DNA of 64,000 nt, taken from the sequence record MN453779.2; one strand, written 5' to 3'. Made by a program: the position numbers and the translations under genes. The notes under the pieces were generated by a model that was not told where the DNA came from, did no database searches, and was given only the letters and a program-made list of their open reading frames with translations. Position 1 is the stretch's first letter. The number at the start of each line of letters is the position of its first letter. Of this stretch, positions 914-51,655 are shown piece by piece.

Positions 914-3112
914 TTATTGAGCGGTCAGACTTGTCTCGTTATAGGCTTCCAGTACGGAGTTCATCATATAAACACCTTTGGAGAACCACAGACGAGTAGT
1001 CGTGTACATGACAGATTTACCGTTAGGTTCATCTTCCCGGAAACCTGGTTCAACTTCCCAGTTAACGATGACAGAACCAAACTTCTCACGGATATCTTTC
1101 TCAGCTGTATCTTTAACAAAGGCAATATAACCTTGTTGACGATACTGAGTGTCACCAGAGATCTTGATCCAAGTGTCCTGAAGTACCTTCTCCACACAGA
1201 CACATTTCCAAACGTTGGAAAGGTCTTTCAGTACAGAGTCGGTGTTATCATAAACAGTCGGCAGAGCCGGTCGGCAATACTGAGAAGTATTCAAAGGAGT
1301 TACCGAGATAGCACCTTTGGTGAGGTTGTTAGCAGCCGGATCATCATCTTCAAACTGAACCAGTGGATCGTGAGCAACGCGCAGGGTGCGGTTACCTTCG
1401 TGATCAGGCATTCGATCACCGTAGATCTTGCCATCGTTACCACCACCTGCATAAGCAAATGCGTACATGGTATCGATGTTCAGAGAGAAGCGACCAAAAG
1501 TCGGTTCATCGATGATGCGACAATCCCACATGTTAATCGCTGCGCGACAAGCATGAGATTGGAAAGTCTCAGATTCCGGATACATGACAATCTTAGAGTT
1601 CAACGATTCCATAGTGGAATAGAGTTGCTCTTGAGATTTCTTCTTCAGATATTCAGTTGCACACAGTACAACAATGATATCTTTACGAACACCCAGGAAA
1701 TCGATCAGTGCATCTTTAACCGCTTCATTATAACCAACGTCCCACATAAAGGAAGTACGGTTACGAATGACGTCTTTGACATCCAAAGAACGACGGTAAG
1801 AAACAAAGTAAGCTTCCAGCAGAGATTGGTTCATGTACCAATATTGCTTATGACTTACAATAGCCGGAGAGCTGGTATTGGGAACCCAAACACCATCAAC
1901 TTCAGTAGTCCAGTCGGCGGGAGCGTCCGGGTACTTACCAGTTTTATCAGCATAGGGGTTAATACCACCGTTAGCTTGCAAGTAACTGTTCAGACCGACA
2001 CGAGTACCTTTGAGCTTGGAAGGAACATCTACCAGACCACCGAAGACGATGTGGTGATAATTCTTACCATAATGGTTAACCAAACTCAGCGGGTTCATGA
2101 TCGCTCCTTGGGGAAGGACATCGGTCTTGATCACCGGGGGAGTTTGTTTACCATCACCATATTCAGCTGCATACAGTTTAGTACAAACATCGTTCAGATA
2201 GTTGGTATAAACATGAGCAGATTCAAACGGTGCCGCTTTATCTTCCACTGGACGGTTTACTTGACGACCGGTGAAACGATCCAGACCACCTTGTACAGAA
2301 TAACGAACGTTATTAGCGCCAACGCTATTGAACAGGGTAATAACGGAATCGGGAGAACCGATAGTAGTAGTTGCTGGTACACGGATTCCACTAGAAAGTA
2401 GCTCACCGATGTTCATGGTGAACGGATATGCACCGTAGTTGATTACAAAACGCGCGATCTCATTCCAGTCGGTACCAAAAGAGTGACCAATGGCTGCATA
2501 CATTGCGTTGTAGCTATCGCCAATGCCTGAGAGTAACTCAAACAGCGGATAGAACGTCCCCGCGGTATCAGCAGGAACTGCTTTACCAGCAGGAGCGATA
2601 ACTTCGAAACTCTTAACCTCTCCTACAGCGGTAGCTTGATCGACAAACATGGTTGCCGGAGAAACAAAGATACCAGGAACAGTAGGAGTGTCTTCATCTA
2701 CCTTTGGATTACCTGCAATGTCAAGCACATAGTCATCACGGGAATCACGTTCGTAGTTAGGAACAGGAACACCTTCGAAGAGAACAACCCCGAGAATAGT
2801 ACGCGCTACTTCGACGTTATTAGTGAGACGCTTAAAGCTGAAAGAAGCTTGCGCTGCAGACCCAAGCTTTTGAATAGCGACCGCGATCGGGTTATAAAAC
2901 GGACCATACGGATCCATTACATCACCGAACTTCTCTTTGAAGTCAGCGACCGCGACTGTATCGCGTTTAGTCGGGCCCCGAGGGGTGACCATAGCGAAGT
3001 CAGGAAAGTGAGCAGGAGAGGCGAAAACGGGGATTGGATTAGTAAGATTTTCTTTGCTAACAATACCTTCGTTTACCACTTTTCCCGGAATCACTTTATT
3101 AAAAGTAGTCAT
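914..3112 (-). CDS. Tail sheath protein (phiKZ gp29-like)
   Basis: 732 aa with sheath-like N-terminus (TPRGPT...F...FG) and C-terminal WDVGY and PALPTVY segments. Strong codon bias. Divergent from the three-virion-gene/terminase block, as in phiKZ. Confidence 0.8.
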   Translation of the reverse strand: MTTFNKVIPGKVVNEGIVSKENLTNPIPVFASPAHFPDFAMVTPRGPTKRDTVAVADFKEKFGDVMDPYGPFYNPIAVAIQKLGSAAQASFSFKRLTNNVEVARTILGVVLFEGVPVPNYERDSRDDYVLDIAGNPKVDEDTPTVPGIFVSPATMFVDQATAVGEVKSFEVIAPAGKAVPADTAGTFYPLFELLSGIGDSYNAMYAAIGHSFGTDWNEIARFVINYGAYPFTMNIGELLSSGIRVPATTTIGSPDSVITLFNSVGANNVRYSVQGGLDRFTGRQVNRPVEDKAAPFESAHVYTNYLNDVCTKLYAAEYGDGKQTPPVIKTDVLPQGAIMNPLSLVNHYGKNYHHIVFGGLVDVPSKLKGTRVGLNSYLQANGGINPYADKTGKYPDAPADWTTEVDGVWVPNTSSPAIVSHKQYWYMNQSLLEAYFVSYRRSLDVKDVIRNRTSFMWDVGYNEAVKDALIDFLGVRKDIIVVLCATEYLKKKSQEQLYSTMESLNSKIVMYPESETFQSHACRAAINMWDCRIIDEPTFGRFSLNIDTMYAFAYAGGGNDGKIYGDRMPDHEGNRTLRVAHDPLVQFEDDDPAANNLTKGAISVTPLNTSQYCRPALPTVYDNTDSVLKDLSNVWKCVCVEKVLQDTWIKISGDTQYRQQGYIAFVKDTAEKDIREKFGSVIVNWEVEPGFREDEPNGKSVMYTTTRLWFSKGVYMMNSVLEAYNETSLTAQ

Positions 3113-3226
3113 ACTCGACTCCGAAATTATGTTGGATTTTTTTGATCAAAAAAATCAATCGTATGACCTTACGGCCACTAGATGGTTTAACGTTAATACG
3201 CATAACATTATTTTGGGACTAGACCT

Positions 3227-4102
3227 ATGATTATAAATGGTTACGACACCACAGTCGGTAGTCGTTTTAAAGTAAAAGACAAAGCAACTGAAACCATTCG
3301 AATGCTCCAAAGTAGCGATAAATTGGAGTTGGTGGATCAACGTGGGGTTTACGCAATCTCTCACAAGAATGATTACAATCTTCCTCCTTTTATCTTCCCT
3401 ATTTCCACGCAAAACTACATGCGTGAAAAAGTAACTATTTTTGATCAACGTCCGTACATTAATAAGGAAGGTAGAAACGTTAATCTTCCCGAATATAATG
3501 TCATGTTGTTAGCTGCCTGTTTGCAACAAGATCTGCAAAACAATCAAACCACTTTGATCAAATCAGTTCGTCCATTTACTATCAAAGCATTCGCTAATGC
3601 AATGGGTCGTAAACTGGAACGCATGGTAATGCTGGACGTGAATCAATCTATGGTGGTTCGCGTCATCCTAGCTTATTATTATGTTTGTCTTCTGGAAAAT
3701 AGTCGAGATGACTTTGCATTCGTAGCCCAGAACAGCATTCATGGTGCGCTGCGTTTTCCTATTCCTTTTATCCAAGAGACAATCAAAGATTTGGGTTTTG
3801 TTAACACTCTTCCAGAACTACTGAAGGCACTGACCACTCATCCTGCTTTGCAATCTCTTTCTCGTTTGGATCTTCCAGGTCTGGTACAAGCTGGCACCAC
3901 CATCTTCTTTTCTACCTCTGGGTTTAAACAACTCATGGGTGCTGCACTAGAGATGCCTGCATTGTTCACTGCTCTGTGCTGGGGTGCTGCTACTCAACGT
4001 ATTTACCAAAACACTATGATTGGTGAAGAGTTGAACGTAAAGCAAGACAAACGTGTAGAGACCTTCATCAGTACTGTTGGATATTATTTTAAATCAGCCT
4101 AA
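3227..4102 (+). CDS. Virion structural protein (phiKZ gp28-like)
   Basis: 291-aa ORF, first gene of the block between sheath and terminase. Assigned by synteny. Confidence 0.5.
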   Translation: MIINGYDTTVGSRFKVKDKATETIRMLQSSDKLELVDQRGVYAISHKNDYNLPPFIFPISTQNYMREKVTIFDQRPYINKEGRNVNLPEYNVMLLAACLQQDLQNNQTTLIKSVRPFTIKAFANAMGRKLERMVMLDVNQSMVVRVILAYYYVCLLENSRDDFAFVAQNSIHGALRFPIPFIQETIKDLGFVNTLPELLKALTTHPALQSLSRLDLPGLVQAGTTIFFSTSGFKQLMGAALEMPALFTALCWGAATQRIYQNTMIGEELNVKQDKRVETFISTVGYYFKSA

Positions 4103-4118
4103 TCAACTGGGGTAATCC

Positions 4119-6935
4119 ATGACAGCTTATGTTGCTTCGCACACCCAGGAGAATAATCCACTTGTCGATTATGCATTTAACACGATGTGGGGTAATCCAG
4201 AATTGGATTCTCAATATCAACTTAAGCTTGCTCGGGTTTCTCCAGCGCTTGGTTATGTGAATAACTTCTTCTATATGGGGAAGTCGTTTACACTACCAAG
4301 TGAAGGTGTGTTTTATCATGTCTTTTCAATGGGTGGTTTAGACCTCGACTACTGGAATATGGGTAGTCGAGGCAATCACTGGTATCCGTTTAATACTTGG
4401 GTGAAAGCTTCCACTATTTCTCATGATCGTGGTGTTGGGTTGGATGTTTATAATAGCAAAGGTAGAATCTTTCCAAGAACTCATACCTATATTTTAAACA
4501 CCTTCGAGGGGAACACTTTTGTAGCATTCCCTATTAATGGTAATTATCCAATTCCTGTTAGTAGTAACATGTATATTCGTTGTTACACGACAGATATTAA
4601 CACTGCGATTATTCCAAGTGATCAACAAGTTAAATGGCGATTTGGTTATTCTGGGGTAGAGTTTGTAACTGGTTCTGATTTAACCAATTTGAAGAATCAT
4701 TACAATGCTTATTTAGCTTATGGTATTGGGAAAGTCACTTTCTTTGTAAATGGTGTTATTACTGATATTAGTAAGTATGTTGGTCGTATTGGTGATCTGT
4801 TAGAAGTTTACTACGATCCAACTATCAAAATGGAAGTAAAGTACCAGTACGGTAGTTTGAATGACTATTACTCTGAGAAAGATAGTAAACGAAAACTATT
4901 AATTTTCCCAGGGTTTACTGACAAACCTCGTAAATACCAGTACTTTGATGATTGTGAGTTCTTCGTAGTTAATCGGTTAACTGGGCTAGGTCTGTATTAT
5001 CATCGTAATAGTCAAGATGCTATTCGTCAGTTAACTCATCAGGATTATGGATTAACTTCTGACTACGTAAGTTTCTTGATTAGTGAACTTATTGGGTTGA
5101 GTAAAGGTAAAGCAACTGAGAATGATTTCGATGTTGTAGTTCGTTACAGAGATACTAAGTGGCAATTTAATCTAGGTCCCAATACTAGTCGTATTAATGA
5201 TCTTTACTTACTGGAAGATCCAGCAGTAATTCTTCAGGCGATGATTGGACCTCATGCTACTGTAAAAGAGTGGACTCCAAGTGAATTGGAGAAAGCTCCT
5301 TGTAACTATGTGCTCAACTCTATTGCACCAAAGATCACCACTGAACGTGTAAGAGACGCTTTAGGTTACAATGGTTGTTCTACAGCTCTGTCTGATTCAC
5401 CTCTGTATATGCCGTTCATTACTCCTGGTGATCCAGCCTTTGAAGATATCTTCCCAACACCACCTTATACTTCTGGGTTAGGATATCGTATTCCTGCTAG
5501 TTATGTTGAATCATCTACGGCTTATGAGTATAACAAAGATGGATTATATATCCGTAAGAGTTCTATTCGTAATAGTGAATGGTTTAAACCAGGCCAGGAT
5601 ACTCACTACGTGGAGTTTGTAGTAGGTCAGGCCAGTACATGGTTAGACTATGAAATTAGCAGGGTAGATGTCCAAGCTAGACCTGGTTATGGATTCCGGG
5701 TATTTAAAGCAGGCTGGATTATTGATGATAATCCAGAGCCCACACCAGATACTAGTTTGTTTGCTAATGAAGTAGCAATTACTTCTGACGGTAATGACAT
5801 CTATCCTAGTCCCACAGAGTTAAGCATTGGTGGTGATTTAACATTAGCTAATCCAGTTGGACCTGTGACCACAGGTAGACCAGATGGCAAGTGGGTCGAC
5901 ATTACTGACAGTAATGAATACCAAGTTATCGATGGTGTTATTAAATGGAAGTTCGATACCAACAACCACGTTGGATTAGTTATCTTTGATACCATTCATT
6001 TGTATAACGAATTTGATCTAACACATGTTGATAATTCCGTTTACTTTGGTATTACGCACCAGTGGGAAATTGGTGGTGTTCTAGCTACTATGGAACCTGG
6101 TCAACTTGATGTCTGGTGTAATGGACATCCATTGATTGAGAACGTGGACTATAAGGTAGAATATCCTTATGTATACATAATCTCTAAAATGTGGTTAGAT
6201 CAATCTGGTACAAACAAGTTTGCTTATCGTGGACGAGGACTCAGTGCTGGTGGTTTGATCCCATCTAGTGAACTGGGTTTTGTAATGGATGGAGTGATTG
6301 GGCACAACGGTCGTTATAATCTTCGCATAGATCGTCCCACAAAGACTATTATTAACGGTAGACTTTGGATCACCTCTGCAATTGATCAAGCTGAAGATAT
6401 TCATCACGGAACTAATGTAGCTGTATTGAACGGATTCCCCTATGAGGTAAAACACATCTACTGTGATAATAAGTATGTTGAACAGTGTGATTTACATTGG
6501 GGATTTAAAGAATCCAGAGAGCTTGATAAGAAGGTTAGTGACTACTTGACAGAACACGTTAAGTACAAACCTAAAGCTCCTGTTAATTATCCGTATCTTC
6601 AGGAAGACCGTTATAGACTCTTTAGTCCATTCTTAAGTCAAATTGTAAATGAACTGATCTTAGGTTTCTTACCGACTCCTACGCCTAGCGATACGCCGAT
6701 TAAATATCCAGACAGTGTAATTGATAATTTAACTCGTCCTTATCAATGGTTGTTGAAGTTTGATCCGATTAAACTTAACATGGATTTGAGATTCTTCTCT
6801 GTTCATCCTTACAGTAATCTTACTCGTCCAACTGTTACTCCTAATCAATTAACAATTATCTCTCGAGTTAACGATTTGTATCTCGATGGTAAGTTGAAGA
6901 TTGAAGGTTTCTTTGAGGTATCGTCTAATGTTTGA
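4119..6935 (+). CDS. Large virion structural protein (phiKZ gp27-like)
   Basis: 938-aa ORF, GGGGT RBS, Y/N/G-rich and beta-rich composition. Assigned by synteny. Confidence 0.5.
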   Translation: MTAYVASHTQENNPLVDYAFNTMWGNPELDSQYQLKLARVSPALGYVNNFFYMGKSFTLPSEGVFYHVFSMGGLDLDYWNMGSRGNHWYPFNTWVKASTISHDRGVGLDVYNSKGRIFPRTHTYILNTFEGNTFVAFPINGNYPIPVSSNMYIRCYTTDINTAIIPSDQQVKWRFGYSGVEFVTGSDLTNLKNHYNAYLAYGIGKVTFFVNGVITDISKYVGRIGDLLEVYYDPTIKMEVKYQYGSLNDYYSEKDSKRKLLIFPGFTDKPRKYQYFDDCEFFVVNRLTGLGLYYHRNSQDAIRQLTHQDYGLTSDYVSFLISELIGLSKGKATENDFDVVVRYRDTKWQFNLGPNTSRINDLYLLEDPAVILQAMIGPHATVKEWTPSELEKAPCNYVLNSIAPKITTERVRDALGYNGCSTALSDSPLYMPFITPGDPAFEDIFPTPPYTSGLGYRIPASYVESSTAYEYNKDGLYIRKSSIRNSEWFKPGQDTHYVEFVVGQASTWLDYEISRVDVQARPGYGFRVFKAGWIIDDNPEPTPDTSLFANEVAITSDGNDIYPSPTELSIGGDLTLANPVGPVTTGRPDGKWVDITDSNEYQVIDGVIKWKFDTNNHVGLVIFDTIHLYNEFDLTHVDNSVYFGITHQWEIGGVLATMEPGQLDVWCNGHPLIENVDYKVEYPYVYIISKMWLDQSGTNKFAYRGRGLSAGGLIPSSELGFVMDGVIGHNGRYNLRIDRPTKTIINGRLWITSAIDQAEDIHHGTNVAVLNGFPYEVKHIYCDNKYVEQCDLHWGFKESRELDKKVSDYLTEHVKYKPKAPVNYPYLQEDRYRLFSPFLSQIVNELILGFLPTPTPSDTPIKYPDSVIDNLTRPYQWLLKFDPIKLNMDLRFFSVHPYSNLTRPTVTPNQLTIISRVNDLYLDGKLKIEGFFEVSSNV

Positions 6936-21624: not shown

Positions 21625-21875
21625 ATGAGAGAAAATACTTTCTATTAAGCTTTGAGTTTCAACAAGATGTGATAGAGCATGAAGCAACAGAAGAGTTTAT
21701 TCAAACATGGATAACAATGTGGTCCGGCGACTGGAACTCGAATCCAGAAGACTTACGTCGCCACATTTTAAGTATGGTCCCTTTACCGATTTGGGCACCG
21801 CCGGAATATATAGATCGGATCTTTCTCTTTGTTGTCATGAACACCAATAGGTCTCATATTGTTTATTTACCTTAG
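21625..21875 (+). pseudogene. Small ORF with an apparent 1-nt frameshift after codon 3
   Basis: GAGGGG RBS and ATG at 21625 stop after 7 codons. One extra A in the A4 run at 21632-21635 would join it to the 21669-21875 frame. Confidence 0.4.
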
Positions 21876-22323: not shown

Positions 22324-22400
22324 TGGTGGGCCTGGTGCGATTTGAACGCACTACCTAAGCCTTATGAGGACTCAGCTCTGACCAAGTGAGCTACAGGCCC
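22324..22400 (-). tRNA. tRNA with CAT anticodon (Met or Ile2)
   Basis: Full cloverleaf: GGGCCTG/CAGGCCC acceptor stem, CT-CAT-AA loop, TTCAAAT T-loop, encoded CCA. Confidence 0.92.
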
Positions 22401-22984: not shown

Positions 22985-23061
22985 TGGTGAGCTCGGTGCG
23001 ACTTGAACGCACGACAGGAAGCTTAGAAGGCTTCTATTCTATCCAACTGAATTACGAGCTC
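22985..23061 (-). tRNA. tRNA-Arg (TCT)
   Basis: GAGCTCG/CGAGCTC acceptor stem, GAAGC-CT-TCT-AA-GCTTC anticodon arm, encoded CCA. Confidence 0.93.
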
Positions 23062-44900: not shown

Positions 44901-46802
44901 ATGCAAGTTAACAACAACGAAAACAACGCTATGAACACTACCCTGGGTCTGGGTACTTCTTCTAACGGTTCTGGTTCTCCTCTGGCTGCGCTGTTTGGTA
45001 GCACCAACCTGATCACCTCCTCCCACTCCGCAACCGAAGTTGCTGATGTGATCAAGTACCTGCAAGAGAAAGTTAAAGAGCTGCTGGCCAACACCGCCCC
45101 TGAAATCCAGAAAGCAACTCTGCCGCGTTTCATAGAACGGCCGACCTCTGACATCACCCCGCATCTGCCCGCCATCGCAATGTACACCGTACTGGGTACT
45201 AGCTGCTACGTTATGCCGATCCTGTTCTACAAAGCGGGTTTCACCGATGCCACCGATACCATCCAAATGGGTAACGAAGCTCCGCGTGGTTATGCTAAAA
45301 CTCCGACTTCCTTCATGACCAATGATGTAATGAAGAAGGTTAAGGAAAGCTTCAAATTGATCGACGGTAAAACCATGACCAACGTAGTGATTACCGCACC
45401 GATGGTAATGAACCTGGAGCGTTATATCAAAGCTGGTATTACCGGCGAAGATATGGCCGCTAAAGTTGGTCACAAACTGCTCAAAGAGTGGCAGACCGGT
45501 ATTACCAACATGGCTGCTCTGGAAACTCAGAAAGCTGGTGGTCAACTGCCCAACCCGTTTGCCGGTGGTAAACTGTTTGGTCAGCATGAAGCTGCTCTGG
45601 CTCGTGTTGAGTCTGTTCATCAACTGGTTGTTGATGGTCTGCCTGTTCCGTATAACCTGGCTGTTAAGCTGGCAACTGCCAACAAGAACAACATGACCAA
45701 CTACGGTAACAACACCGCCAAGACCATCCTGACAACTTACCTGAACGTCCAACTGGAAACCATGTCTCCTGGTCAGTTCAACGATGTTCGTGCTCGTAAC
45801 CCCGGTCGTCCTTGCGGTCCGATCGTTCCGGTTGTTGTAGCTGGCATGTCCAACCCTGGTGAAACCCTGCATCACAACAACTCCCTGATGACCCAACTGC
45901 TCGGTCTGTTCGCAAGTCTGGCAGCTAACGCACCGGTGTTCTTCTCCGAAGCGTTCCGTGGTCAACAGGTTGGTAACCGTGGTAACCTGGGCGTGTTCAA
46001 CAACTACATGGCTTCTATTCTGGGTCCTGTGTACGGTGCTGATCACAACCTCACCAACAAGAACATCACCAACATCGCAGTAACCAATGACTGGATCCAG
46101 CGTTATGTTGCTCCCCAAGCAGTATACGCAATCGATCTGATCGGTTATGTAGATGAAACCAGTAACAACGACTTCTGGTTCGGTATCACTTCTGGTGACA
46201 AGTCCTCTACCTACGTTCGTTCCATGATCTCCCTGTGTGATCTGCTGACCGGCGGTAAGTTCTCTGCTCTGGCTAAAGAGAACACTGAGAAAGGTGCAAA
46301 CCGTGACAAGTCCAAAGAGTGGGCGTTTGGTGATGCTATCATGCATCGTACCAACATCATCCGTCCTTACGGTATCGCCAAGAAAGGTAATGCTTGGTTT
46401 GATCTGGGTGAAGTCGATGGTATGTTCCTGCGTCAGCCCGAGTACTACGGTACCAATGAAGTAGCAATTAATGAGTACAACGCCCTGCTGCAAGGTAGCA
46501 TGGGTAACATTGATACTCGTATCCGTCAGTACAACATCCTGAACCGTCTGCAGGCGATGTTCAACAACGATGTGATCGTTGAAGGTTGGAGCCTGCGTTA
46601 TGTATTTAACCAATCCTTCTTCAACACCCTGGCTCAAGCAATGTCTGCTGCTGGTACTCTGTCCGTATCCGGTAACAACGCTGCCGCTAACTGGACCATG
46701 CACGTTCAGAACGAAATCCTGAACATGACCATGGGTGCTAGCCTGTCTAACGCTCCGGTCACTCAGAACGTAATGAACAACGTGATGTACACCCAGTTCT
46801 AA
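44901..46802 (+). CDS. chmA: Chimallin (phage nuclear shell protein)
   Basis: 633 aa, extreme high-expression codon bias, early promoter at 44806. Lies immediately upstream of the nvRNAP beta-prime gene, as phiKZ gp54 does. Assigned by size and synteny. Confidence 0.82.
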   Translation: MQVNNNENNAMNTTLGLGTSSNGSGSPLAALFGSTNLITSSHSATEVADVIKYLQEKVKELLANTAPEIQKATLPRFIERPTSDITPHLPAIAMYTVLGTSCYVMPILFYKAGFTDATDTIQMGNEAPRGYAKTPTSFMTNDVMKKVKESFKLIDGKTMTNVVITAPMVMNLERYIKAGITGEDMAAKVGHKLLKEWQTGITNMAALETQKAGGQLPNPFAGGKLFGQHEAALARVESVHQLVVDGLPVPYNLAVKLATANKNNMTNYGNNTAKTILTTYLNVQLETMSPGQFNDVRARNPGRPCGPIVPVVVAGMSNPGETLHHNNSLMTQLLGLFASLAANAPVFFSEAFRGQQVGNRGNLGVFNNYMASILGPVYGADHNLTNKNITNIAVTNDWIQRYVAPQAVYAIDLIGYVDETSNNDFWFGITSGDKSSTYVRSMISLCDLLTGGKFSALAKENTEKGANRDKSKEWAFGDAIMHRTNIIRPYGIAKKGNAWFDLGEVDGMFLRQPEYYGTNEVAINEYNALLQGSMGNIDTRIRQYNILNRLQAMFNNDVIVEGWSLRYVFNQSFFNTLAQAMSAAGTLSVSGNNAAANWTMHVQNEILNMTMGASLSNAPVTQNVMNNVMYTQF

Positions 46803-46888: not shown

Positions 46889-49800
46889 ATGTCAACTTTA
46901 GCGAATGTACTTGAGCAGTATCAAATACAACATCTTCTTCCAACCACTCTATTTGATAAAATTATTGAAGAGTCAGGTTATACACCAGAAGGTGATGACG
47001 AAAGCTTTTACCAGCCTCTTTATCCAGACATTGAAGATTTTAATTATCGGCATGATACTACTACAGTTCATCCGATCTATCTGAATGATTTCGATTTTAA
47101 TATAGAAGAAGATCGAGAAAAGATTACTGCTCTACTACGTACCGAATATGAAGGAAACAATTTCGATACAGTCGCGAGCTGCACTTGTAAGAAACATCGG
47201 ACTAATGCGTACCTTGGTACAAGTTTCGTTTGTGACAGTTGTGGAGATCCTGTCACTAAACCACTTGGCGAGAAAATCGAAACCAAAGTCTGGCTTCGCA
47301 CTCCTGCTAATGTGTCAGGTTTTATTAATCCTACTATTGCGGAAGTGTTCTTTCGTAAACTTAACACCAAAACTCCTAAGGTAAATTTGATGGAGTATTG
47401 GATTAACAAAGAGTTTAGAAATGAAAAGCGTTTTAGAGACCCAAGTCATAGTGCGTTTAAAATAGCTTGTAAACTAGAAGCTTTCCGTTTGTCGCTCAAT
47501 ATCGAATTTGGATATAACGAGTTCGTTGACAATATGGATTTGATTATCAGATCAGCTATTGAACACGACACTAATGGTGTTCTGGATCTTACTGAAAAGA
47601 ACCGTGAACATTATGCGATGTTCTGGGAAAAATTCAAATCAAGAGCTGTAGCTCAACATCTCCCTTTGCCTAACAAGGTAACCTCTATTGTCGAGTCTGA
47701 CCAACGAGATAAATATGTTAATAAGGAGAAGAGTGATCTTGAAAAGATCTTTTACACCATTGCTGATATGTATCCAGCTTATGACTATCGTTCTACTGAG
47801 AACGCAGAGATCATGGGGAAGATCTTTACTAAACTCAAAAACATGATGTTGGATGTAACTGAATCTATCCTCTTCAAGAAGAAAGGGATGATTCGATATC
47901 ACGCTGGTGCTGGTAAGCTACCAATGACTGGTCGTTCTATTATCACAGGTGAATCTGGTGTTTGTCGCTCAGACACTATCATCGTTCCCTGGTTGTACGG
48001 AATAACTTGTTTGGATAAACACCTAACTAACTGGCTGTATCGGAAAGGTTATACCCCGCTGAAAGTAAAGGAGATTATACGTTCTGCTGCTAACTTTAAA
48101 CATCCTGTTGTAGAGGAGTTCTTTAACTGGGTAGAAAGTAATCGATACGCCATTGCAACGTGCGGTCGAAATCCTTCTATTCAGTATTTGTCAGCACGTG
48201 GTTTCTTTGTACAGTTTAACCGCGATGTAGAAGATAAATCCATCCGGATTCCGATCACTACAGTTAAGGAATTTAATGCCGATCGAAATGTATTTAGCAT
48301 ACATGTGGGAAAATAACTTAAACTATTTTCTCCAGTTAAATACACTCAGTCCCCCTAGGGTGAAAGTCCTAGTGAGGTACCTTTTGAATTGCTGGAAAGT
48401 CCACAAAAGTTACTTACCTAAGCTTAATTAGAAATGATTAAGTTAGTGGTGTCGAAAGACAGAAACAACAAGTAACCTGTCCTACGCTAAGAAATAATGC
48501 TAAGGGATACTAACAAGGGATAATCAGCCTCCGAGGATCTAAGTATATTCGTGATGAATAGATAGGATTCAGGTTCAACGACTGTCCCGTGGCTGGGAGT
48601 AGGGAAATCAGATTTCCTGAAGTATTAGGCACCTAACCGTGTAAAGACGTAGGTGATGGTATAGTCTGCTCCTCTAGTAATGTAGAGGCGGGTGTCTTAG
48701 CGCACCGGTGTTATTATGATAGCCAAAATGGCGAACGGTAATAACACGGACATAAGGTTCGACGGTAAACTTTTGCTGTCATTAAACCCTTTCAATTGCT
48801 GGAAACCCCTTAGAGCTTAATCAACTAAAGCGGAATTGGAAACAATAAACGTAAATGTTTGAAAATGATTAAGATTGGGCAATCAGCAGCGAAGCTTCTA
48901 AATACATTTGAGATGAATGGATACGAAGAACGTTCAACGACTACGTTCCCAGAAGCCTGGGATGATGAGGGCGCTTTAAAGCGAAGATATAGTCTCTACC
49001 GGTATGAAAGTATCGGATGGAAATCCCTGACCGGAATTCCACGTGATCTAGCGAATCACGAAGAGTCCTAAAAAGACGGAGAACAATAATGTTGTTAATA
49101 CCTGAATCCGATGGGTTCTTTGTTACTGAAACTGGTCGAGTATACGACAAAGACGGCAAAGAACGAAATTACTACACCAACGGAGACGGGTATATTACCG
49201 CCTCGATCTCTATTGGTGGTAAGTGGCAAACATTTGGGGTACAGCGGTTGGTCATGTTAGCCTATGAACCGATTGATAATCCAGATGACTACACGGTCAA
49301 TCATATTGACCTTGATAAAACCAATAACAACAAACCAAATTTAGAATGGCTGACAACAAAGTGGAACAATATCCATTCTGCTATTTTTAACAGTAAAGGT
49401 AAACGCCCTGTTGTCAGATGTTTGAATGGTGATGAAGAAATGTTCATCAAAGATGTGATGACGCTTCCCACAATTCTTGGTGTCGATATCCAGCAAATAT
49501 GGTTTGCAATTAAGAACTCAACCCAGATAAATGGATGGTCCATTTCACCGATCCCTTATGACGATAAAGAAATTATCCGATTATTGAACAGTTCCATTGG
49601 AACTGTTGATGGACCAGTGAGACCAGTTAGATGTTTAGACATCGAAACTGGAATTTGGAAAAATTACAAGAGTATGAAAGAAATGGCTAATGAATTTGGT
49701 GTTGGTATAACACACATCAGACATCGCTTAGCTACCTTTGAACGTCCTCGTATATTTCTCCAACGTTACATTATTCTGGATGATGGAGTTTCAGATGAGT

Positions 49801-50104
49801 TCATCACCCCAGAACTAATCGCCATGTTAAAGATGACTTGGACGAAGAAAAGAAAGCGTTGGTCAGAACGCTGTAATTAGGACTCGATAAAAACCACTTA
49901 TGTGGAACAATGTGATAGGATAACATGTATCTATTCTTTATCCCCGATATGGTGGGTAAAGTAAATGCGTATAGTAACTGGGGGCACCATCAAATGGTCG
50001 ATCCAAACAAGCCGTTTAAAACAAGTAGATTTGTTGCAGCGACACGAACTAATCTCTTAAACATAAATAGCGTACTTCTTAATACACCGATTGAGGAGGA
50101 CTAA
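46889..50104 (+). CDS. Non-virion RNA polymerase beta-prime N-terminal subunit, spliced: join(46889..48283, 48758..48766, 49919..50104), 529 aa
   Basis: Zn-binding Cys pairs, GRSIITG and CGRNPS motifs. Joining the three exons restores KEFNAD-FDG-DNMY (catalytic NADFDGD). Confidence 0.9.
48284..48757 (+). mobile_element. Group I intron 1 (474 nt, no ORF)
   Basis: Follows U and ends in G. Core motifs: P GAATTGCTGGAAA (48386), Q TAATCAGCC (48521), R GTTCAACGACT (48573), S GATGGTATAGTCT (48655). Confidence 0.88.
48767..49918 (+). mobile_element. Group I intron 2 (1152 nt) carrying an HNH ORF
   Basis: P1 pairs exon GACGGU with guide GCUGUC, including the U-G splice-site pair. Core motifs: P CAATTGCTGGAAA (48793), Q AATCAGCAG (48881), R CGTTCAACGACTA (48931), S GAAGATATAGTCT (48983). 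Ends in G. Confidence 0.92.
49089..49880 (+). CDS. Intron-encoded HNH homing endonuclease
   Basis: VQRLVMLAY...VNHIDLDKTNN...NLEWLT..WN..H motif and C-terminal RPVRCLD...YKS..E.A repeat. GGAG RBS. Lies 3' of the S motif. Confidence 0.88.
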   Translation: MLLIPESDGFFVTETGRVYDKDGKERNYYTNGDGYITASISIGGKWQTFGVQRLVMLAYEPIDNPDDYTVNHIDLDKTNNNKPNLEWLTTKWNNIHSAIFNSKGKRPVVRCLNGDEEMFIKDVMTLPTILGVDIQQIWFAIKNSTQINGWSISPIPYDDKEIIRLLNSSIGTVDGPVRPVRCLDIETGIWKNYKSMKEMANEFGVGITHIRHRLATFERPRIFLQRYIILDDGVSDEFITPELIAMLKMTWTKKRKRWSERCN

Positions 50105-50831: not shown

Positions 50832-51158
50832 ATGAAGCAAGTTCACGAAGATGATATTTGTGTTGTAACACGATCTGAAGTTGATGTTAATCGTTACTAT
50901 GGAAGTGGACGTCGTAGTAAACTACCTCTGCCAATGCTTAGGTATCAGGACTCAAGTGATCCCAATAAAGAAAATGGTTTCACTTTGGAAGGTGTAATCG
51001 CTTCTGCTATTGATCGTTTGGAGCACTTTAATACTGGACAGTTTAAATGTGATCACAATGATCGTGCTTTGGAACATCTTCGTGGCGCATTGAAAGAACT
51101 CAATGACCGAGTAGAAGATCGTAAAGCGCGAGATGTTTACAACACCGACAAAGCTTAG
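50832..51158 (+). CDS. Tad1-like immune-signal sponge protein
   Basis: YQ...NG.T.E.VI...IDRLEHF....FKC..N..A...L..AL..L..R..DR..R.V pattern recalled from the Tad1 family. Confidence 0.6.
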   Translation: MKQVHEDDICVVTRSEVDVNRYYGSGRRSKLPLPMLRYQDSSDPNKENGFTLEGVIASAIDRLEHFNTGQFKCDHNDRALEHLRGALKELNDRVEDRKARDVYNTDKA

Positions 51159-51166
51159 GAGTTAAC

Positions 51167-51655
51167 ATGGGTGCTGGATACGCCTCTTTCCAGATGGATT
51201 TGAAAAGTGCTGTAGCGATTAATGCAGCAATTGAAAAAGAAGAGATTAAATGCGCTGATGACTTTCACGAGAAGTTAGCAACTAAGATTAATATTGTAGC
51301 TAATGATCTTCACGCAACACTAATGTATGACAAGCGAGATCCCGACATTAGTCCAGGGATTAATCGTAAATCATACAAAGCTAAGGTAATCAACGTAGAG
51401 AAGCTAGGAGTACCCGGTAAGCAATTCTACGCCCTAGTCCTTACCCTTGAGTCAGAAGAGATCCAGAAACGTTTTAAAGAGCTTCTGGAGCTTGGGTTTG
51501 AGCATTCCTTCCCAGAGCTTAAACTCCATTGTAGTTTGTACTATGGAGATGGGACTGAACTGTGTTATAAGTTCATGAAGCGTTTATTTGATGAAGGTAA
51601 ACTTCCAGAATACATTACACTTTGTAATGAGAACTGGAATGCTTGTAAAGACTAA
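51167..51655 (+). CDS. acb1: Acb1-like 2H phosphodiesterase (anti-CBASS)
   Basis: Two HxT/S motifs (LHATLMY, LHCSLYY) and LVLTLESE...R...L..GFEHSF, matching the T4 57B/Acb1 layout. Confidence 0.75.
   Translation: MGAGYASFQMDLKSAVAINAAIEKEEIKCADDFHEKLATKINIVANDLHATLMYDKRDPDISPGINRKSYKAKVINVEKLGVPGKQFYALVLTLESEEIQKRFKELLELGFEHSFPELKLHCSLYYGDGTELCYKFMKRLFDEGKLPEYITLCNENWNACKD

Follow-up and report, generated by a model that had tools for sequence, protein, structure and literature searches.

The locus at positions 46889 to 50104 of the 64,000-nt stretch analyzed here (the window, from sequence record MN453779.2) raises the question of how a phage can make an RNA polymerase catalytic subunit whose Mg-binding NADFDGD loop is divided among separate open reading frames (ORFs). 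The answer suggested by the sequence and by comparison with relatives is that this beta' gene is very probably split by two group I introns lying 9 nt apart in the DNA for the loop. The locus matches Aeromonas phage PS2 (MN453779.2), a nucleus-forming jumbo phage, at 100% identity and with unchanged coordinates, and phage PS1 is identical too; both are lytic phages that were isolated on A. hydrophila ATCC 7966, belong to the genus Ferozepurvirus, and have genomes of 237 to 240 kb. No intron is annotated at this locus in the GenBank record of PS2, which instead presents four separate plus-strand ORFs: PS2_0048 (46889-48316, noted as similar to the beta' subunit of OBP), PS2_0049 (48865-49071, a 68-aa hypothetical protein), PS2_0050 (49089-49880, a putative HNH), and PS2_0051 (49925-50104, a hypothetical protein).

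All parts of the predicted gene are organized on the plus strand. Exon 1 (46889-48283) has 465 codons and ends in EFNAD (AAT GCC GAT), with the first catalytic Asp codon, GAT, at its very end (48281-48283). Intron 1 (48284-48757; 474 nt) follows a T, ends in GG, and contains no ORF; an in-frame stop (48314-48316) lies 11 codons into it, and a stop codon soon past the 5' junction is the usual arrangement in phage introns (PMC3073962). The micro-exon TTCGACGGT (48758-48766; TTC GAC GGT) codes for Phe-Asp-Gly, including the second catalytic Asp, and serves intron 1 as its 3' exon and intron 2 as its 5' exon. Intron 2 (48767-49918; 1152 nt) again follows a T and ends in AG, and exon 3 (49919-50104; 61 codons and a stop, DNMYLFF) starts GAT AAC ATG TAT, its first codon (49919-49921) specifying the third catalytic Asp. 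The three Asp codons of the motif are distributed one per exon, and the terminal guanosines are G48757 for intron 1 and G49918 for intron 2. The exons total 1590 nt and, when recomputed in frame, give a 529-aa product containing ...KEFNADFDGDNMY... (also written ...TTVKEFNADFDGDNMYLFF...) that is collinear with intron-less homologs; the predicted ligated junction is GCCGAT-TTCGACGGT-GATAAC, and the predicted peptide across the NADFDGD junctions is EFNADFDGDNMY. An earlier note on this DNA, made from the letters alone, had proposed this layout, and its coordinates and lengths all hold on re-reading and recomputing, as does its placement of the catalytic Asp residues in different exons; chance is very far from explaining the match of coordinates, group I cores, and profile gap. 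Its central claim of two independent group I introns and a retained 9-nt FDG exon is borne out by Rfam, by guide pairing, and by single-intron and intron-less alleles.

The strongest support for the layout comes from these natural alleles, in which the junctions are present as contiguous DNA. The close relatives share 94 to 95% identity with PS2 over the aligned parts of the locus and 98.5 to 99% in the exon 1 protein, and they differ in which insertion site is occupied: site 1, after the first Asp codon, or site 2, after the Gly codon of FDG. AVP1 has intron 1 alone (GCCGAT, a 1468-nt intron, then TTCGATGGTGATAACATG), with a 336-aa HNH ORF located within the P1 extension and closed by ACACUAACAC/GUGUUAGUGU, and its empty site 2 is contiguous and reads TTCGATGGTGATAAC. 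In pAEv1810 site 1 is empty and site 2 holds a different, ORF-less intron (AATGCTGACTTTGACGGT, a 382-nt intron, then GATAACATG), and ACP1 combines the 474-nt intron 1 and the 9-nt exon with a pAEv1810-type intron of 379 nt, such that PS2 and ACP1 have different intron lineages at site 2. Aeromonas phage D3, a member of another genus, has an ORF-less 310-nt copy of PS2 intron 2 (87% identity) at the identical position, and its siblings D6, D9, and LAh10 have no insert. The micro-exon is contiguous with exon 3 in AVP1, ZPAH34, and CF8, and with exon 1 in pAEv1810 and D3, and every exon-intron boundary proposed for PS2 is thus seen contiguous in some relative.

The exon sequences flanking these sites have patterns of their own. 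D3, with the intron, and D6, without it, have five synonymous differences within 13 nt of the site and about one per 50 nt elsewhere, a cluster that fits either co-conversion or selection for P1. In ACP1 there are dense substitutions just upstream of intron 1 (L002 2875-2886), changing TVKEF to TCGAF in an exon that is otherwise nearly the same as that of PS2, and this patch may be a co-conversion tract from a divergent donor. The Gly codon of FDG is GGT in every allele bearing a site-2 intron and is mostly GGC or GGA in intron-less alleles (L017, L019-L025), which is consistent with U being required at the splice site, or with avoidance of the target.

The interrupted gene is, by sequence, a homolog of phiKZ gp55, the beta' N-terminal subunit of the non-virion RNA polymerase (nvRNAP). 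Exon 1 matches phrog_2987 (RNA polymerase beta subunit) with an E value of 5e-116 and covers positions 2-418 of the profile, exon 3 covers positions 422-477, and the gap between them is exactly three positions, which equals the size of the micro-exon (FDG); conceptual splicing restores the NADFDGD loop. With exon 1 as the query, tblastn returns 289 jumbo-phage records, including PHIKZ055 and many annotated beta' subunits (OBP and others), and the same method detects a single copy of the gene in PS1 and PS2. Directly upstream is the gene for chimallin, the nuclear shell protein (44901-46802, plus strand; phrog_4795, 'nuclear shell protein', E 7e-95), in synteny with phiKZ gp54-gp55. Pfam gives no match to exon 1, exon 3, or the PS2 chimallin, all of which are matched by PHROGs. 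As to the remaining deposited genes, PS2_0051 is exon 3 called from an internal ATG, and PS2_0049 lies wholly within the ribozyme core of intron 2 (P5-P9) and is probably a spurious gene call.

Both introns match the Rfam group I model RF00028, as the earlier note had suggested that covariance models would show, and they are its only matches in the 64-kb window. Intron 2 scores 79.6 bits (48702-49016, E 1e-18) and intron 1 scores 42.4 bits (48332-48687, E 5.6e-9 locally and 1.9e-7 over the whole window); the intron 1 homologs score from 43.8 to 62 bits, those of ZPAH34 and CF8 exceeding the gathering score. The full set of P, Q, R, and S elements that had been reported for each intron can be located by reading the plus strand, at 48386-96, 48520-29, 48573-84, and 48656-67 in intron 1 and at 48793-803, 48880-90, 48932-43, and 48984-95 in intron 2. 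The cores are phage IA2-like in both. Intron 1 is organized with a long P1 extension (48284-48348), P2, a P3-P9 core, and P9.1/P9.2, ending at its omega-G (48757), and intron 2 has its P3-P9 core at 48787-49016 and an ORF in a 3' peripheral loop, ending at omega-G 49918. Aligning eight intron 1 family members (A1) yields a consensus with P4, P5 with its extension, P7, P7.1/7.2, P8, and P9.1, and in 26 of its 68 predicted pairs both sides change with the pairing preserved; covariation was analyzed for this family, and for P1 alone in the case of intron 2.

The two PS2 introns fall in different, supported clusters of an intron-core tree, which is a rough one, with cores cut by a loose motif and some truncated, and from which only well-supported clusters are used. 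The peripheral domains differ as well, with the large P5 extension and P9.1/P9.2 found in intron 1. An origin of the pair by tandem duplication is rejected on these different lineages and peripheral domains. A nested twintron is rejected too, in that the introns lie side by side with coding bases between them and each is found alone in relatives.

The same few codons are interrupted repeatedly in other jumbo phages. In a survey comparing the ends of the tblastn matches to exons 1 and 3, where a spacing of 9 nt signifies no intron, about 20 distinct phages are intron-less (e.g., OBP, N1M2, Kc263, pEt-SU, AH04, RisingSun, and pTD1), and introns are absent from all 7 of the 7 IMG/VR relatives found by protein. 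Insertions follow the Asn/Gly codon in phiKZ (with the gp56 HNH) and AerS_266; the Ala codon in EL (with the ORF025 HNH), phiKp_32, and VB_ZK_P1; the first Asp codon in PS1/PS2, ACP1, AVP1, ZPAH34, and CF8; and the Gly codon of FDG in PS1/PS2, D3, ACP1, pAEv1810, AerS_266, HHBS47_1, Miami, phiKp_32, VB_ZK_P1, Aphrodite1, and 5 TSL-2019. All inserts are group I introns at E <= 1e-6 except the second insert of phiKp_32 and VB_ZK_P1. This 311-nt insert after FDG (phiKp_32, L012 1990-2300; VB_ZK_P1, L013 990-1300) has a U before it, a G at its end, and a guide-like match, GCCG, and Rfam gives no match to it even at E 10; it may represent a group I subtype that RF00028 does not cover, or a different kind of insert.

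Micro-exons are correspondingly varied in length: 9 nt in PS1, PS2, ACP1, and one metagenome contig, 12 nt (GATTTTGACGGT) in Klebsiella phage phiKp_32 and Raoultella phage VB_ZK_P1, and 15 nt (GCAGACTTTGACGGT) in AerS_266. The most elaborate locus, found by a pattern scan, is on a 113-kb contig of an uncultivated chimallivirus (IMGVR_UViG_3300046328_000321; L028), where a beta'N homolog again follows the chimallin gene and has four inserts (2695-4215) of 370, 342, 339, and 347 nt, none with an ORF and all scoring 68 to 88 bits, above the Rfam gathering score. The first splits GRN|PS, the last three are spaced by CCAAATGCTGAT (12 nt) and TTTGATGGT (9 nt), and the conceptual product is collinear with the PS2 protein (GRNPS...NADFDGD...KPF). 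Relatives therefore have zero, one, two, or three introns in 21 bases, and the arrangement is not unique to this phage, as alleles with two or more inserts and a micro-exon recur in ACP1, phiKp_32, VB_ZK_P1, AerS_266, and L028. A 22-mer of the twin junction has no occurrence in IMG/VR; an 18-mer finds 109 stretches over two collections, 7 of which have an intron core upstream, the rest being chance matches. Metagenome loci L029, L076, L082, L084, and L131 have site-1-type introns with a ...GGACAWAAGG 3' end before TTYGAYGG in more divergent DFDGD genes, indicating that this intron family extends past gp55 orthologs. Serratia phage 2050HW has a group I intron with an endonuclease ORF (L006 1916-3340, 82.6 bits) in an RNA polymerase beta subunit gene, and a 112-nt stretch of its core is 87.6% identical to PS2 intron 2, suggesting one ribozyme scaffold in different polymerase genes.

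Pairing of each intron with its upstream exon accounts for the predicted 5' splice sites. The intron 2 P1 hairpin (48761-48780, plus strand) pairs GACGGU (48761-66, entirely micro-exon) with GCUGUC (48775-80), with a U48766.G48775 wobble at the splice site and additional pairs of A48767/A48768 with U48773/U48774; the proposal that this P1 draws on no exon bases but those of the micro-exon is confirmed by the unconstrained minimum free energy (MFE) fold of 48750-48800, which has the same 6 bp, or 8 bp counting intron bases. In intron 1 the exon strand GAU (48281-48283) pairs with the guide GUC (48349-48351, plus strand) directly 5' of P2, U48283 forming the U.G wobble at the 5' splice site, and in the MFE fold of 48278-48378 this pairing is the base of the long extension hairpin. 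The intron 1 guide is assigned from its position beside P2, covariation, the MFE fold, and the equivalent hairpin of L028, which is a compact GAUC-AAAA-GGUC.

Across relatives, a GCYGUC guide opposite exon GACGGU is found 9 to 15 nt inside the intron for 10 of 13 listed site-2 introns; ACP1, pAEv1810, phiKp_32, and VB_ZK_P1 have a shorter or displaced guide, and in AerS_266 the automatic search chose another guide. L028 has a compensatory P1 pair (exon GAUGGU, guide GCCAUC). Relatives with the insertion 3 nt upstream of site 1 have an exon ending in GCU and, at the equivalent place, the guide GGC rather than GUC, and the pairs are UUCGGU/GCCGAA in AerS_266 and CCUAAU/GUUGGG in phiKZ. The guide differs with the insertion site in every case, and this is the strongest internal evidence that these are genuine 5' splice sites.

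The endonuclease genes are similarly tied to position. As had been noted previously, intron 2 alone of the PS2 pair has an HNH ORF (49089-49880, plus strand; 263 aa), which is preceded by GGAG 7 nt before the ATG and closed off by a 9-bp plus-strand stem (49063-71, GAGUCCUAA, with 49877-85, UUAGGACUC) seen in the sequence and in a fold with the ORF replaced by a tetraloop. Its product contains the NHID...NLEW...NNIH motif and matches phrog_59 (E 9e-28), and its score against Pfam HNH_3 is 23.1 bits, just below the cutoff of 24.8. The nearest relatives are the site-2 intron ORFs of Miami, HHBS47_1, and 5 TSL-2019 (31 to 41% identity over about 250 aa), of which the Klebsiella phage Miami ORF (328 aa, L011 970-1953) is unannotated in the deposited record. 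Members of this clade are 323 to 330 aa, and the PS2 protein is without the last approximately 65 residues and may have lost a DNA-binding module. A second HNH clade, of site 1, comprises the ORFs of AVP1, EL, and phiKp_32, with phiKZ gp56 standing apart. Endonuclease lineage thus follows insertion position across genera, as expected for site-specific homing.

In Aeromonas phage ZPAH34 (L007 ~640-770) the AVP1-type HNH ORF is reduced to its two ends, with the middle deleted, and in CF8 it is gone; together with the ORF-less PS2 intron 1 and the shortened PS2 HNH, the ZPAH34 remnant represents stages of the usual gain-and-decay cycle. From the 9-nt distance alone, intron 1 would likely co-home with intron 2, although the PS2 HNH is shortened at its C-terminus. 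Intron 1 is, however, the sole intron in AVP1, where it has its own HNH, and in ACP1 it has another partner, and this allelic series indicates that introns 1 and 2 assort independently over time.

A mechanism that would join these observations begins with two unrelated mobile group I introns inserting independently, 9 nt apart. The phiKZ nvRNAP is encoded by early genes, is absent from virions, and transcribes late and possibly middle genes (review PMC7598289), and the PS2 pre-mRNA would likewise be made early, its two ribozymes folding independently. The 5' site of intron 1 would be chosen by exon GAU pairing with GUC 48349-51 at the base of the long P1 extension, and that of intron 2 by micro-exon GACGGU pairing with GCUGUC 48775-80; guanosine attack and exon ligation at G48757 and G49918 would then yield GCCGAT-TTCGACGGT-GATAAC. 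Structurally the two introns could be spliced in either order, since neither P1 draws on any exon but the one directly upstream of it and a UUC spacer lies between G48757 and the intron 2 P1. If exon 1 were joined straight to exon 3, FDG would be lost without a frameshift and the subunit would be inactive, and the dead product of exon skipping raised in the earlier note is a reasonable prediction. Given the role of the gp55 family in transcription, a working enzyme depends logically on both splicing events.

The plainest alternative is that there is no splicing, that PS2_0048 to PS2_0051 are separate small ORFs, and that the beta' gene is fissioned or dead with its function supplied elsewhere. 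The deposited annotation lists separate hypothetical proteins only, and several points weigh against our interpretation: long-read transcriptomics of phiKZ detected no splicing of the introns predicted at gp56, gp72, and gp179 (PMC10914365), an example of how prediction and detection may part ways, and splicing in PS2 and its relatives is inferred here from DNA. The structures add to these points, with an intron 1 score below the RF00028 gathering score of 50, just three exon base pairs in its P1, an A-C mismatch in its P3, weak P10 pairings in both introns, and an automatic guide search that works for 4- to 8-nt guides and fails on the 3-nt guide of site 1, picking GUU or GUUA elsewhere. Exon pairing through three bases has a precedent in the Azoarcus intron. 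The unspliced products, however, would retain a single catalytic Asp of the three, both group I matches are significant, exact in-frame restoration fills the 3-residue profile gap, sister phages have contiguous alleles, and one gene copy is detectable in the genome, so that a lack of splicing is very improbable. It is just as hard to credit that the whole 1635-nt block is removed as one unit, twintron-like or with exon skipping giving the main product, and the 9 nt lost; skipping would keep the frame, but the NAD-DNMY product is without the FDG present in every homolog, and each intron has its own P1 and terminal G and occurs alone in relatives. The low bit score, 3-bp exon pairing, and P3 mismatch could also mean that PS2 intron 1 is a weakened ribozyme needing a phage or host chaperone, or prior removal of intron 2, and the long P1 extension may be the scar of a lost ORF. 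This is improbable when set against AVP1, where a nearly identical core is the sole intron, the related cores of ZPAH34 and CF8, and the covariation supporting a maintained fold.

Somewhat less doubtful, and still unlikely, is that the double insertion is adaptive, either timing or gating nvRNAP production or shielding the DNA for the active site against the homing endonucleases of competitors. In PhiPA3, an HNH from a polymerase-gene intron does give a competitive advantage against phiKZ (PMC11620839), the HNH lineages are site specific, the target is disrupted in occupied alleles, and the Gly codon of intron-less alleles is mostly GGC or GGA and not GGT. Yet phages 94 to 95% identical at the locus carry one intron or another partner, many relatives have none, the PS2 HNH is truncated, and the intron 1 ORF is lost. 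The pile-up of introns is best explained by selfish homing, in which distinct HNH lineages would be tied to distinct positions, an occupied position would leave the next one open, and the ORFs would then decay (none in intron 1, shortened in intron 2); near-identical phages persist with 0, 1, or 2 introns. We put forward more tentatively, as a possible extension of selfish homing, that the 21 bases coding for (P)NADFDG are a multi-lane homing hot spot with at least 5 adjacent positions, where lineages would retarget by a 3- to 6-nt guide change plus an endonuclease switch, and would stack since one occupied lane leaves the next open. Micro-exons of 9 to 15 nt would result, and three bases in addition to the downstream P1 may be the shortest length possible; stacked alleles would determine mutual exclusion or incompatibility when jumbo phages co-infect a cell, and splicing would proceed without coupled translation, inside the phage nucleus or on exit from it.

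The components of this arrangement are familiar. Predictions of the phiKZ gp55 intron, and of HNH ORFs in the polymerase genes of phiKZ, are long-standing (PMC10914365, PMC11512511), in agreement with the earlier note that single RNA polymerase introns are known in phiKZ-like phages. The phiKZ gp55/gp56/gp56.1 locus is like that of PS2 in gene, catalytic motif, group I core (RF00028, 75.6 bits), and HNH ORF, but its single intron is inserted 6 nt upstream of the PS2 intron 1 position, after the Asn codon (the junction reads CCTAAT|...ACG|GCTGATTTTGACGGC), has the guide GUUGGG and an HNH of another clade, and leaves no micro-exon. In PhiPA3 gp210, too, a group I intron with an HNH interrupts a chimallivirus polymerase gene where conserved Asp residues are encoded, and this HNH nicks the intron-less allele of a co-infecting phage and acts in phage competition (PMC11620839); it differs in being a single intron in the virion RNA polymerase beta subunit, a different polymerase, and its activity has been demonstrated by experiment, whereas that of the PS2 HNH is predicted. 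Staphylococcus phage Twort, like PS2, has several group I introns in one phage protein gene, three in its case, with documented exon skipping (Landthaler and Shub 1999, summarised in PMC3073962), although these are mutually similar and not in a polymerase active site, and the PS2 pair are of different lineages. Placozoan mitochondrial cox1 has a single-base micro-exon between two independent group IB introns at the codon for a conserved catalytic residue, with RNA-seq support (PMC5436844), but it is organellar and has no homing-endonuclease allelic series. The T4 td/nrdB/nrdD and SPO1-type introns (with HNH or GIY-YIG ORFs) share with those of PS2 an IA2-like core, a peripheral-loop ORF, insertion in a conserved motif, co-conversion of flanking exons, and an early stop (PMC3073962), and differ in having one intron per site and in splicing that is aided by translation of the upstream exon. 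In a nucleus-forming phage, translation may be unable to give such help during transcription (PMC12908238). The searchable library, which is incomplete, yielded no paper that describes stacked introns or micro-exons, whether for a phage gene or for the NADFDGD motif. The PS2 arrangement is real, recurrent, and unannotated, and is made of familiar parts, single phiKZ-type polymerase introns and organellar micro-exons being already known.

Other features of the window include an ORF (51167-51655, plus strand) matching Pfam Acb1, an anti-CBASS 2H phosphodiesterase (52.5 bits), whose neighbor at 50832-51158 is annotated as anti-Thoeris in the AerS_266 record. A cluster of three tRNA genes is located on the minus strand (21723-21804, 22327-22400, and 22988-23061; Rfam).

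The deposited records of PS1, PS2, ACP1, AVP1, and others break up the catalytic subunit of an essential polymerase into three or four 'hypothetical proteins', and annotation pipelines consequently miss it. The graded natural alleles (none, either, both, or three introns) in culturable close relatives make old questions about group I introns testable, including the minimum length of an exon that can still serve as both 3' and 5' exon, the order in which neighboring ribozymes act and how often they skip, how guide and endonuclease co-evolve in a 3-nt shift of homing site, and whether stacking arises from competition between endonucleases. With transcription kept apart from translation in nucleus-forming phages, these introns may splice without the ribosome help described for T4.

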